NCBI GenBank assembly: GCA_964199315.1
Contig: OZ116698.1
Coordinates: forward strand, 7,688,001 to 7,752,000
Length of the DNA stretch: 64,000 nt
Direction of reading: 5' to 3'
Source of the DNA: Orbicella franksi
Lineage: Eukaryota
The notes below the pieces were generated by a model. That model saw only the letters and a program-made list of their open reading frames with translations, did not search any database and was not told where the DNA came from. Numbering within the stretch: position 1 is the stretch's first letter; each line of letters begins with the position of its first letter. Both the position numbers and the translations under genes were made by a program. Positions 254-6,200 of the stretch are shown here, one piece after another.

Positions 254-3200
254 CAAAGTCATATTCGTGACATGCTTTCTTTACCAGCTCATGAGTCTTG
301 AATGACCGTTCAACACACGATGAACAGTCATCTGCAGAGAAGGAACACAATAACATCAGAAACTATTAGCAACAATTAGAAGGATTAATTTGGCTCTGCT
401 ATTGAAAGTTTCGCAACGTTTGGGACACAAGCGTTGGTATGCAGAGGGTAACATTCCGCAGGATAAGCATGCTTAGGGAAGAAGGCTAACCAAGCACCAC
501 TTTTTACTAAAATATATAAGGTACAAGGGCCCCAAACTTCTCGCCCTTTACTGGAACAAGAAAGGTTCGTTTATTTTGTACACGATTAGTGCCACTAGAA
601 TGATTGTTGTTTTTTGTGCCTGTTTGTTTGTTTGTTTGTCTGATTTATTAACAGTCATTATCGAGGCTAAATTTCTATGGAAAGCTAACTTATTTCTGAC
701 ATAGTGTAACAAAATAGGGCATTATCATTTATTTTAAAACTCAAAAAAGATTCTAAACTAGGCAATGTATTCTTCGTTTAAAAAAATACCTTGTGAACAC
801 CTGCAATAACCTTCTTCACAAATGCCTGCAAGCAGCGCACTTTTTGGATTCGATGAATAGAATTTCGTGCAGGAATCAGCTGTGACGAAATACAAAGCAG
901 CACGAAGTGAATTATAGAAATGAAAAATTCACAAGTTATTTACCAATTAACCAAGAAATTGGCTTACCAGGTTTGTAATAATCATAAACTTTCACTGGAA
1001 CTGGTTGGACTGTTCCCACGTCATACATTCGGTTAACCACAAACGTTGCACAAAATTCGTCAGTGCTAGAGATCTACAATAAACGTAAAAAGTTGTAATG
1101 GTTGACGTAGATAATTAATTATCTATGAATGAAAAAACACCATGTTTCAAACATATCTTCAGTGGAATTGCTATGCAATCCCTCAAATTTTATTGCATTT
1201 GGGGAGATAGACGAGGTTGGCGATTAAGTCTATTTATATGAAAATTTCATTCAACAGTTACAGCTCAGCTACGTGATAACATATTAAACTTAAGAGCCTT
1301 TTATAAAAAGATACCTAAGACTACTATTCGAGTTGGCTAATATATTGCCTAAGGTGGTTTTGAATCTCACGTCTCCTCAAAATATTTCTTGTATAATAAC
1401 GGATGAAATAATCCAATGTCAGAAAGGCAAACTTGACAATAGCTCGTACTCGTTTTTCGTTTGTGCGGACTTTCATCTTATGTAGCTGAACTTTGTAAAA
1501 TGGGGTTGACAGGCCTGCACGAATCGACTCTCAAGCGCGTGTTTTAGCCTTTTATAGTTTGGCTCTCACAAGTATATCTTTGAGCGAACGCCCTCTTTTG
1601 TATGAAACGAGGGGCGGATCCTTGCAGATTTCGCTCAGTAATGGTTGTTGTTCTATTAAATGCCATTTTTTCATTAGGATTTGTTTTAGGTTTGGCACTG
1701 ATGGTTGATATTGTGTGACAAAAGGCAAGATTCGTTTGTTTTCTCTCTGTTTTGGTTGGAGGGCTAGTTTCCTCTCTTCAAAGTTCACTTCAGAGAGGGT
1801 TGCTTGAATAAGATTCTCTGGGTAACCTCTCTCAATAAGGTGTGACTTGAAAGTTTTGATTTTCTCTTCAAATATTTTCTTAGAAGAGTTCGTTCTGAGA
1901 AGTCTTAAAGCCTCTCCTTTGATGAAACCTTTTCTAACTCCCGGTGGGTGGGATGAAGTAAAGTGTATATATTGGAACGTTTCAGTAGGCTTGAAGTGGG
2001 TACGCACATCAAGAACTGAGTCTTTTTTGAATCTTTCGCCTTTAGAAATGTTCGTATCCAGGAATGTCGTTTCTGTTTCAGAAACCTCAGCCGTGAATTT
2101 TATTGTCGGGTGGTGGTTGTTTGCTTGTTCAATGAACTGTAATATTTCATCCCTGTTTATAGTCCAGAGTGAAAATATGTCGTCTATATATCGTTTCCAG
2201 ACGAGCGGTTGAAATGTGCTTTGGCTTAGGATTTCTGTGTCTACCTTACTCATGAAGATGTTAGCAAATGCTACTGCCATCTTTGTGCCCATGGCTGTGT
2301 CATGTATTTGGAGGTAGTTTTTTCCAGCGAACTGGAATGAGTTTTCCTGTAGAATTAGCCTTAGCGATTGCTCTAGTAGTGGTGTTGGGATAGGAGGTTT
2401 GTTTACGTAGAATGTTTCGTATGCTCTGCATACTGTTTGGATTCCCTCCTCTTGTGGTATGTTCGTATAGAGGCTCGTTACGTCCATTGAAACAAGTATA
2501 ACAATCACGAATGTTAAAGAAATTGCTGGCAGTATCCAGGCTAGTATTGCTCAGTTCAGCAAAATGATGGAAAAATTAGGAGACATTGAGAATAAACAAG
2601 TTCAAAAGTACAAATGTGTATTCTCTGACTCCCACTACAACACAGGGGCCAAAAATAATGCAAAAAACTCAAGAGGAAGGAATGCAAAAAGCAATCTAAC
2701 GAACAAAAAGCGCAAAGAGCGCAGAAAGATCAAACAAAAGAAACAATCACACATACAAATAGAGGCGAACCAAAAACATATAAAAAACCTCTCAAACAAA
2801 GGACTCTCAAATGACCAGATCAATTTGCTGGCAAAAGGGCTCAAATTTATCCCAACACCCGTGACAAAACAAACACAAATAAAGCGTCAAATCTTGCGTG
2901 ACTTCGATCAGTACGCAAGAAGAATGCGCCTCATGTACATATTTCACGGGCAAAACAACGAACCACATCCTTTCCATGTAAAATCTACATGGGAACCACC
3001 AATACAACAATCAGTTGCCCTTGAAAGCTACCTAGAAGAGGTGAAGAGCGAACTCGCAGACTTAAAACTCACAAAGCCTAAAAATAATCTATCACCCGCG
3101 GAACGCGCGGCTCTCAAAGCCTTAAAGCGTGACAGCGGAATCAATATTAAAAAGTCAGACAAAGGAACAACCACTGTTGTGATGAATACAGAAGACAAAA

Positions 3201-6200
3201 AACAAGAAGGTCAAATCCACCTAGACAACATAAACCACTACAGGCCTCTTGAAACACCCATGGTAATTTATACACAACATAGGGTTGAACAACTCATCGA
3301 GCTCTACCGTAGAAACCACATAGACGAAATCACTAAAAAATGGCTTTGTGAAACGCCAAAACCGCCTCGCATTCCAGAATTCTACACCCTTACTAAAATA
3401 CACAAACCGACCCCGGTCGGTAGACCAATAATATCAGGGTGTGAAGGCCCAACAGAGAAATTATCATCGTTTGTTGACAAACTACTTCAGCCTATTGCAA
3501 AACAACAGACGTCTTATCTCAAAGATTCAACAGACTTCATTAATTTCATAGAAAAAACGAAAGTCCCAGCGGACGTTATACTTGTTTCAATGGACGTAAC
3601 GAGCCTCTATACGAACATACCACAAGAGGAGGGAATCCAAACAGTATGCAGAGCATACGAAACATTCTACGTAAACAAACCTCCTATCCCAACACCACTA
3701 CTAGAGCAATCGCTAAGGCTAATTCTACAGGAAAACTCATTCCAGTTCGCTGGAAAAAACTACCTCCAAATACATGACACAGCCATGGGCACAAAGATGG
3801 CAGTAGCATTTGCTAACATCTTCATGAGTAAGGTAGACACAGAAATCCTAAGCCAAAGCACATTTCAACCGCTCGTCTGGAAACGATATATAGATGACAT
3901 ATTTTCACTCTGGACTATAAACAGGGATGAAATATTACAGTTCATTGAACAAGCAAACAACCACCACCCGACAATAAAATTCACGGCTGAGGTTTCTGAA
4001 ACAGAAACGACATTCCTGGATACGAACATTTCTAAAGGCGAAAGATTCAAAAAAGACTCAGTTCTTGATGTGCGTACCCACTTCAAGCCTACTGAAACGT
4101 TCCAATATATACACTTTACTTCATCCCACCCACCGGGAGTTAAAAAAGGTTTCATCAAAGGAGAGGCTTTAAGACTTCTCAGAACGAACTCTTCTAAGAA
4201 AATATTTGAAGAGAAAATCAAAACTTTCAAGTCACACCTTATTGAGAGAGGTTACCCAGAGAATCTTATTCAAGCAACCCTCTCTGAAGTGAACTTTGAA
4301 GAGAGGAAACTAGCCCTCCAACCAAAACAGAGAGAAAACAAACGAATCTTGCCTTTTGTCACACAATATCAACCATCAGTGCCAAACCTAAAACAAATCC
4401 TAATGAAAAAATGGCATTTAATAGAACAACAACCATTACTGAGCGAAATCTGCAAGGATCCGCCCCTCGTTTCATACAAAAGAGGGCGTTCGCTCAAAGA
4501 TATACTTGTGAGAGCCAAACTATAAAAGGCTAAAACACGCGCTTGAGAGTCGTGCAGGCCTGTCAACCCCATTTTACACTGTATGACAAAGATTCATGCA
4601 CAGTAATTTCTGGACCGACCAGATACAATTAAATTTTACCTTAATAAACTAATTTTTAAAAAAGAGTACCTTACCTCACTGACGTATAATATCACAGATC
4701 TGTCAGAAATTTCAAAACGGTCCACGGCTGGTCGGACGTTTTCCATGAGCTGTGGAATGCGGGTAAGCACATAAAATCAGTCCGATATTGATCTTAGTAA
4801 TCACATTTATATGAGACTGAAAATATTGCAGCTCTAACACTGGCAGGAGAATTTGTTTACCTCAACCAGTGAATCCTTGTCAGGAGTAAATCCAGAGAAA
4901 ACTCCAACCTCCATTATTGTCATACCAGATTTACCATCCTTCAGATACCTGTTGTCAGATCCGCAAGTGGCCGGCAATTAAGCAAGTAAAACATAAACTA
5001 CAATTATGTCGGATGGTTTGTTGTTGATTCTTCCCCTTCTCATATACATAGGTAATTAGCAGCGACAGGAAAATGTAAAAGTTAGTGACCAAACTGGCAG
5101 AGAAGAACCATTATCAATTAAACTATGGTTACATCTTGTGTGAGTGTGAGATATCTACAAAAACTCCAGAAAGAAGCTCATATCAAATTTCTTGGAATTT
5201 TATTCGACTTTTTCCAAAACTCAGTAGAAATCTATCTCTTTATTAATTGGATTTTAGGGTTACAGCTTTGGCATCATGACCACAAAAATATGTTCCAGTG
5301 ATGCCCAGCCAGTGGCCAGGTTTCTGGTCACCCAATCCAACAATCTGTCAGTGGAATTTCTACTCAACATCCTAAAATAAAGAATTAATTACACGTGCAG
5401 CTCTTTCATGACCCACCTTGCGCAAATTTTAAGTTGAAGCGAATCCGGTGGCTTTGCATCTGTCTTTGGTCTTTTGTGATACTTTTGATTTTTCCTTCTC
5501 TTTTTGCAAGATTTCTTCTTCTTGTTTTTCCGACATTTCTTGGCCTTTCTTTCTCTTTCGTCTTCGTCTCTTCTCTCCCTCGAACGTCCCATTATTGGCA
5601 CCACATCTTCTTTGCCCTCTTTTATTTCTTCTCTAGTTTCAATCTTTAGTGCAAAGTGGCAAGATTCGTTCTTCGCTGATGGTACATTATGACGGACTTC
5701 AATCTGAAAAAGTAGCCAAATGTTTAAAGCAAGTATTCTTAAAGGACGATTAGCTTGAAGCGAACAATCCTCGTAACCATTCTTTAATTTATAAATAAAA
5801 CGAGTGAATGAAAGCTGAATACTAAAACAGCGTCCATACTACGCCGGAGAAATTTGAAAATGTAGCCTTATTTCTGCCGTTAGGTTTACCGTCCACTCTA
5901 ATCCGTCACGAAAACGGAGCTTTTTGAAAACGCTCCTTTCCACCGGAGGAAATTGAAAACGCCAGCTTTTCGTGTTCTTGTGGACAGTAAAGATTTTGAA
6001 AACGGAGCTTTTCGAAAACGATGGCGTCACGGTAATCATTTGGTTTCCCTAACCGAGCTTTCTCAAACACAAATCCAGAATTACCGGTGATTTTTGTTTT
6101 TGTTTTTTTTTTTTTTAATTTCTCCGGCGTAGTGTGGACGGAGAACATTTGATGTGTTCTAAGAGAGAGACCTCTGTTCTCAAATTTCCGACTGCGGCAT

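Follow-up and report, generated by a model that had tools for sequence, protein, structure and literature searches.

Penelope-like elements (PLEs) are still divided, in a preprint of July 2026, into interstitial elements that carry an endonuclease (EN+) and telomeric elements that lack it (EN-), together with sporadic losses (10.64898/2026.07.22.740005). The EN- clades tied to telomeres are Athena and Coprina, and occasional EN- members are found in Neptune (MjPLE01) and in Chlamys (PLE-X) (PMC8557442; 10.64898/2026.07.22.740005). An inverted 5'-truncated copy next to the 5' end is a described architecture of Penelope insertions (PMC8557442, PMC3846280). Tandem and inverted organization is considered very likely to be set by the cleavage properties of the endonuclease (PMC8557442), and the EN- PLEs of protists and fungi do not share the organization in direct and inverted repeats (PMC3846280). 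Here, we analyse a PLE in a stretch of 64,000 nucleotides from the stony coral Orbicella franksi (assembly GCA_964199315.1, contig OZ116698.1, positions 7,688,001 to 7,752,000, forward strand; the whole stretch is called the window below). We read this element as a dead composite copy of a family that belongs to an EN- PLE clade, produced by reverse transcription primed from both ends of a DNA break, and give this reading as a whole a probability of about 0.6. The window copy itself is a typical PLE composite insertion, and the interest lies in its family and in the clade to which that family belongs. A literature search that did not extend to Repbase, Koyama 2013 or Gladyshev 2007, one of which may hold a prior description, found no interstitial EN- clade of metazoan PLEs.

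The original prediction, made from the letters of the window, had described an open reading frame (ORF) of 653 amino acids that encodes a PLE reverse transcriptase (RT) and ends in VRAKL*, and this frame is indeed present (Table 1). It contains the motifs GLKF (corresponding to the N-terminal GxKF of PLEs), DKG, VSMDVTSLYTNIP, QIHDTAMG and RYIDDIF followed by a thumb region, and both these RT motifs and its grouping with GIY-YIG-bearing PLE proteins in trees identify the element as a PLE. A Pfam search of the frame gave no significant match. RVT_1 is borderline in Pfam even for intact relatives, and the PLE identity therefore rests on homolog searches, in which relatives with 33-44% identity carry RVT_1 and GIY-YIG.

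The C-terminus of the frame reads ...SLKDILVRAKL*. In the EN+ PLE ORFs of the same genome the homologous segment ...RSPNLRDLLVTAKL (LRDLLVTAKL) continues into a CGKNCATCP linker and then into GIY-YIG, and the window ORF therefore stops exactly at the boundary between RT and linker. No N-terminal GIY-YIG was found in full-length copies of the family, and Pfam detects no GIY-YIG in the intact homolog P0001 (864 amino acids) or in P0002 and P0137, while the sister-clade protein P0125 scores for RVT_1 and GIY-YIG. A hidden Markov model (HMM) of the linker plus endonuclease, built from the C-terminal tails of 62 EN+ relatives and scoring its positive control at 5e-43, found nothing in any of the six frames of the tandem full-length element, of window positions 1-6000, of a related locus from another coral assembly (L076) or of a locus from the bivalve Pinctada imbricata (L075). 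A nuclease concealed in the N-terminal extension was also considered and rejected: AlphaFold predicts residues 1-85 to be disordered and to be followed by long helices, a fold that is not nuclease-like. The proposal that no GIY-YIG lies either before or past the RT is thus upheld in the full-length copies, where such a domain was sought. Apart from this, the genome contains many identical frames of 153 amino acids in which a GIY-YIG domain stands behind an out-of-frame linker; their appearance suggests that the major EN+ PLE family has given rise, by deletion or frameshift, to an abundant derivative.

The 3' end of the element is well defined. In the 497-Mb assembly its last 199 nt find dozens of matches, and its last 27 nt, with at most two mismatches allowed, occur at 54 genomic sites (the reversed control at none), which lie on all large contigs at interstitial coordinates. 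Immediately past this common end the flanking DNA of the copies diverges, in agreement with the earlier claim that the end is natural and not a truncation. At 18 of 19 distinct junctions CCCCATTTTACA is followed by a C, which puts the true terminus at ...ACAC and extends the right arm of the window copy to 4579. In every copy examined the terminus lies 54 nt past the stop codon, and in subfamilies that are 78-89% identical the stop is found at the unchanged place as either TAA or TGA. Both arms of the window copy had been said to end 53 nt past the stop. This holds for the right arm, while the left arm has a tail of 58 nt because of a private 5-nt insertion; both finish in ...CCCCATTTTACA, and the left arm lacks the terminal C.

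Copies of the family are 97-99% alike, and the family is multi-copy and was recently active. Two or more telomeric hexamers in tandem were found at none of 42 loci, and no preference for microsatellites or any other target was found at the junctions. The interstitial sites and the lack of telomeric repeats at these loci bear out the earlier view of a lineage that lives within chromosomes and not at their ends.

The lack of an endonuclease is a trait of the whole clade and not of one copy. A word-index search yielded 1803 homologs, and among the best 120, for which the fate of the C-terminus was scored, 97 have their end no more than 45 residues from the C-terminal RT boundary, 21 are fragments and none has an endonuclease. 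The other two run 56-71 residues past the boundary, one of them by reading through the stop into the tail. From an exhaustive phmmer search (36,324 relatives) the 150 best representatives of 50% clusters were classed, giving 60 EN+, 55 EN-, 28 fragments and seven in neither class. The position of the stop is conserved down to about 35% identity.

In trees of these proteins the window ORF falls into a group that is entirely EN-, comprising 39 of 123 rows under LG+G4 (support of 95 in the Shimodaira-Hasegawa-like approximate likelihood-ratio test, SH-aLRT) and 26 of 57 rows under LG+C20+F+G4 (SH-aLRT 97). Two subclades make up this group: one of corals, with Acropora muricata, Montipora capricornis and Oculina patagonica as named members, and another to which the bivalves Pinctada imbricata and Saccostrea echinata belong. 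The group next to it (SH-aLRT 99) is EN+, carries a CX4CX2C linker and is Neptune/Nematis-like. Between the window ORF and the element encoding P0001 dN/dS is 0.2, and the RT is therefore under purifying selection. The family thus belongs to an EN- PLE clade of stony corals and bivalves under purifying selection, and the EN- state of this clade is old and long persisting. At least two further groups consisting only of EN- members stand among the EN+ relatives in the trees (rows P0196-P0256 and P0205-P0254), which suggests that lineages of RT-only PLEs are widespread in the public assemblies of invertebrates and of environmental samples.

Eight other copies extend upstream of window position 2503, with different truncation points. 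Other copies have about 1091 bp more on this side than the long arm of the window copy. A full-length copy at locus L041 (minus strand, 5173-1996) measures 3178 bp. Its 5' untranslated region (UTR) has about 490 nt, and its single ORF, which begins MSENLL... and encodes about 880 amino acids, combines an N-terminal helical extension with the PLE RT. Full-length copies are preceded by a pseudo-long terminal repeat (pLTR), a partial-tandem repeat of 105-112 bp derived from the element's own 3' end (105 bp in L041). At a second head-to-head array, L042, the order of inverted copy, pLTR and full-length copy reproduces the classical layout. The full-length copy at this array is broken up at element position 156/157, where unrelated DNA of about 2 kb intervenes (L042:5005-7000, approximately C4:13561004-13563000), probably as a nested insertion. 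Sub-threshold Rfam microRNA matches in the same array (MIR2118 and mir-559; L042:4223-4393) were rejected, as they reflect only the long hairpin of the head-to-head joint; such PLE joints are a likely source of false microRNA calls.

The 5' UTR holds a putative hammerhead type-I motif (RF00163) 21 nt ahead of the ATG and about 430 nt downstream of the tandem junction (L041:4707-4755, minus strand). Over the whole Rfam model it scores 26.6 bits, below the gathering score of 34, with an E-value of 1e-4 in 251 nt. Its cores are CUGAAGAG and GAAAC, and helix III is short and palindromic, as in the minimal type-I form (dimer type) known from metazoan PLEs (PMC4209133). It is identical in two full-length copies (C15 and C4), conserved in three and kept, with a shorter loop, in a relative with 76% identity; the loci concerned are L041, L042, L040 and L039. 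An Rfam search of window positions 1-8000 gave no match; the motif lies in the part that is missing from the window copy. The N-terminal extension of the coral EN- subclade contains a conserved helical module with an invariant C-P and Y, CPxxL[RQ]Y...D..F (P0001:89-168 and homologs), which is present in 26 of 30 EN- proteins with a long N-terminal extension versus none of 16 such EN+ proteins.

The relative in Pinctada imbricata terminates 224 bp past its stop and is likewise accompanied by partial tandems and an inverted 435-bp copy. At its locus (L075; GCA_033119305.1, VSWD01000005.1, 58759241-58766172) there is a partial tandem of 1417 bp and a further tandem piece of 1145 bp, and the 224-nt 3' UTR has CUGAUGAG-like cores. 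Apart from the endonuclease, the EN- clade retains all hallmarks of canonical EN+ PLEs: pLTRs, inverted 5'-truncated copies, a putative minimal type-I hammerhead motif, frequent 5' truncation, a precise 3' end and dispersed interstitial sites. In the other coral assembly, an 86%-identical element (L076:1606-2694) stands directly after a gene with a Mutator-type transposase domain (PF20700).

The window copy is a single, dead, composite insertion made up of a pair of 5'-truncated pieces. Its near-identical arms lie head to head with their 3' ends facing outward, in the intervals 1494-2502 and 3575-4578, and the arm alignment confirms the layout that the original prediction had described. Inverted pairing of 1525-2502 with 3575-4552 (978 nt) is reported as 100% complementary, and the outer 32 nt of the arms also pair (1494-1525 with 4547-4578). 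In the full arm alignment, over about 1004 nt, the arms differ by two substitutions and by the 5-nt insertion in the left-arm tail. The left arm codes for the last 318 residues of the 653-residue frame, while the frame of the long arm is open from the joint onwards, its first methionine being internal. Absent from the long arm are the 5' UTR with the hammerhead motif and, of the ORF, about 226 codons at the N-terminal end. The copy had been taken for a complete young element; with a long arm that is short by about 1.09 kb, it is not. The head-to-head geometry that had been noted is peculiar neither to this copy nor to EN- elements, as the same layout is seen elsewhere in the family, in the bivalve relative and in EN+ copies of this genome. 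Among the EN+ PLE fragments of the genome there are at least 25 minus-then-plus pairs a few kb apart, and together with the inverted copies already described elsewhere these make the geometry ordinary for PLEs.

Both arms encode QIHDTAMG, with the variant bases at 2300 and 3777, and the corresponding codon is that of glycine in 11 other copies of the assembly and of aspartate in none. In total the arms share five private substitutions that are absent from 10 other copies, the change from Gly to Asp among them, and identity is 99.8% between the arms but about 98.3% between them and the other copies. These shared changes favour one event from one source lineage and agree with the common template that had been postulated; two successive insertions from an unassembled source are a less likely origin for them. 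The joint had been placed correctly at 2502/2503 and coincides with 4 nt of microhomology (Table 1), and no target duplication is seen between the flanks at 1493 and 4580.

The window copy probably arose by priming from both ends of one break. A break in the C3-like intron would have left two 3'-OH ends, each of which primed reverse transcription on RNA of one source lineage, starting at the RNA 3' end. One cDNA would have reached element position 1092 and the other position 2175, and the two would have been joined via the TAAC microhomology with no evident target duplication. In the earlier proposal of two cDNAs that start at the same RNA 3' end and are joined centrally, the shared lineage and the microhomology at the joint stand, while the mechanism keeps the standing of a proposal.

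This is an RT-only element with precise 3' ends whose insertions are found at many interstitial sites and build up tandem and inverted arrays. The precision of these ends indicates that the RT starts at the RNA terminus without any need to anneal to the target. As to the source of the break, we lean, with somewhat less than even confidence, towards pre-existing or host-made nicks and breaks that are used by the element's RT. The low copy number, the mostly absent target-site duplications (TSDs) and the long-lasting EN- state favour such breaks. The earlier suggestion of a lineage that is either independent of an endonuclease or borrows one in trans is retained as far as an EN-less, intrachromosomal lineage is concerned, and not as a choice between the two. 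A different source, for instance a recruited host nuclease, seems rather unlikely.

Several points weigh against our reading. The trees cover only the RT part, are unrooted, come from quick searches with SH-aLRT support and leave out the named Repbase references (Neptune, Nematis, Athena, Coprina and MjPLE01). The insertion site is known from the assembly alone, such that target DNA may have been deleted there, a short TSD may be present or the assembly may be wrong. The lack of a TSD, correctly noted at the flanks of the window copy, does not extend to the family as a rule: among some 16 single copies for which both junctions are known, a perfect TSD of 20-21 bp was seen in one and a TSD of 10 bp in another, and the rest show none. 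(A 10-nt match between the flanks at L006 was rejected as a TSD because it is not collinear.) These two duplications imply staggered cuts and fit an endonuclease at least as well as random breaks; EN+ PLEs elsewhere have TSDs of 8-10 bp or none (PMC3846280). With at least 1000-2000 EN+ PLE fragments co-resident in the genome (no fewer than 1018 candidates for GIY-YIG and no fewer than 1978 for linker plus EN), an endonuclease would be obtainable in trans. The tandem and inverted architecture, with pLTRs and head-to-head copies, is also the same in the EN+ and EN- families, which could mean a shared integration machinery.

It is therefore possible, and the most serious alternative, that the target is nicked by GIY-YIG supplied in trans by the co-resident EN+ PLEs, the EN- clade being a semi-autonomous parasite of these. 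Against such borrowing, a 3' end in common with the major EN+ family would be a sign of a trans partner, but the two ends show no similarity. The family numbers tens of copies versus thousands for the EN+ PLEs of the genome, and most of its copies have no TSD. The EN- state is old, with a conserved stop position. Cross-mobilization of EN- PLEs by EN+ ones was not seen in the rotifer A. vaga, and in fungi EN- PLEs persist without any EN+ element (PMC3846280). A bolder form of our lean, which we regard as doubtful, would be that a metazoan PLE clade, of stony corals and bivalves at least, has long done without an endonuclease, with a telomerase-like RT that primes on both ends of existing breaks in chromosome interiors, and that the pLTR architecture of all PLEs is a property of the RT and of break repair and not of GIY-YIG.

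Two independent insertions, the second a 5'-truncated copy in opposite orientation beside or into the 5' end of the first, are an improbable origin of the window copy. A recently active family with many copies that are 97-99% alike could supply both, but the five substitutions common to the arms are missing from 10 other copies and the Asp codon from 11, the arms abut without any target DNA between them and with microhomology, and head-to-head geometry recurs among PLEs far too often for chance. An assembly artefact, or an inverted duplication after insertion, is more improbable still: inverted repeats are error-prone in assemblies (PMC8557442), but these arms are unequal (1009 versus 2077 nt) and differ by two substitutions and a 5-nt indel, and the flanks are unique and hold consecutive exons of one A2M_recep domain in the right order. 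The window copy is truncated on its 5' side, so that its 5' part is invisible there, but a recent deletion derivative of an EN+ element, or an endonuclease hidden at the N-terminus as in Naiad and Chlamys, behind an intron or in another frame, is scarcely credible given full-length copies with no N-terminal endonuclease, a P0001 with no GIY-YIG, the negative six-frame HMM search, a terminus 54 nt past the stop in every copy and a stop position kept to about 35% identity.

The insertion lies in the host gene as predicted, within an intron that measures about 516 bp when the insert is subtracted. The flanking exons match consecutive pieces of A2M_recep, which places the insertion inside an intron of a gene of the C3/alpha-2-macroglobulin family. 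Further minus-strand exons match TED_complement and C3_CUB2, the gene spanning window positions 966-7488, and the long arm of the insert is antisense to this thioester-containing C3/A2M-family gene. Both flanks are single-copy in the assembly, which contains no empty site. Apart from the 3.1 kb and the 1-kb inverted repeat by which it lengthens an intron of this immune gene, the window copy has no function that is evident.

Table 1. Features of the composite insertion and of the adjoining host exons (window coordinates).
Feature	Position	Strand	Remark
Short inverted arm	1494-2502	-	5'-truncated; element positions 2175-3177 of the 3178-bp full-length copy
Arm joint	2499-2502	.	TAAC, 4 nt of microhomology common to both parents
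Long arm	2503-4579	+	5'-truncated; element positions 1092-3178
Open frame, 653 amino acids from an internal Met	2564-4525	+	PLE RT; stop after ...VRAKL
GAC (Asp) codon, RT motif B	3776-3778	+	GGC (Gly) in all other copies; matching change at base 2300 (left arm)
3' tail, 53 nt plus terminal C	4526-4579	+	Conserved natural 3' end of the family, ...CCCCATTTTACAC
Host exon	4837-4977	-	A2M_recep profile positions 2-28
Host exon (approximate; splice donor near 4677)	4639-4770	-	A2M_recep profile positions 23-59; the insertion-bearing intron begins here
Next host exon (approximate; acceptor near 1074)	966-1073	-	A2M_recep profile positions 53-86

A clade that is EN- yet interstitial, and that builds structures of the EN+ type, cuts across the division of PLEs into two groups. 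If the endonuclease is supplied in trans, a whole branch of PLEs lives by borrowing it; if existing breaks are primed, the RT needs no partner for integration at breaks and is what shapes the architecture. Either outcome would inform the mechanism of PLE integration and the link between PLEs and telomerase. The clade would also help to annotate many 'RT-only' proteins of invertebrates.

Among the known systems, the Neptune/Nematis-type EN+ PLEs (PMC8557442) share with the coral family the GxKF and DKG motifs, the thumb, the pLTR tandems and the inverted 5'-truncated copy, as well as 5' truncation, interstitial sites and, as a putative motif in the coral family, a minimal type-I hammerhead whose short helix III is palindromic. 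They possess a CX2-5CxxC linker, which is also carried by the nearest EN+ group in the tree, whereas the coral ORF stops at the RT/linker boundary with neither linker nor GIY-YIG. The coral family further differs from them in having no microsatellite target bias, and its subclade has a helical N-terminal module of its own, CPxxL[RQ]Y.

MjPLE01, a Neptune-like element of the kuruma shrimp, is reportedly terminal and associated with telomere repeats. As outlined in PMC8557442, it resembles the present case as an EN- family that has arisen inside an EN+ animal clade and coexists with EN+ PLEs, and the title of Koyama et al. (2013), as cited there, states that two shrimp elements differ in structure and chromosome localization. 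The present clade is interstitial, spans two phyla and forms pLTR and inverted arrays, and is set apart from MjPLE01 by description only.

With Athena and Coprina the coral family has in common the missing endonuclease, an RT-only ORF and a hammerhead motif, the latter putative in the coral family. Those elements are characterized by reverse-complement telomeric repeats at the 3' end, telomeric repeats on truncated 5' ends and a terminal site, whereas the coral 3' end is ...CCCCATTTTACAC, no telomeric repeats occur at or near the copies, and these are spread along the chromosomes. The coral family also differs in its tandem and inverted organization and in grouping with linker-bearing EN+ PLEs. 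Naiad and Chlamys (PMC8557442) similarly have pLTRs, inverted truncated copies and marine invertebrate hosts, while the coral family has neither their N-terminal GIY-YIG nor the CxC domain. Naiads lack a hammerhead motif, whereas the coral family has a putative one.

In twin priming and endonuclease-independent insertion of L1 both ends of a break prime, the joints show microhomology and TSDs are often absent. The window copy resembles these events in the probable use of both break ends as primers, in the microhomology at its joint and in the lack of a TSD. In L1 twin priming, however, the inverted piece starts from an internal priming site, whereas here both arms start at the exact 3' end of the RNA. 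Endonuclease-independent L1 events are 3'-truncated, while the 3' ends of the coral family are precise in 18 of 19 junctions.

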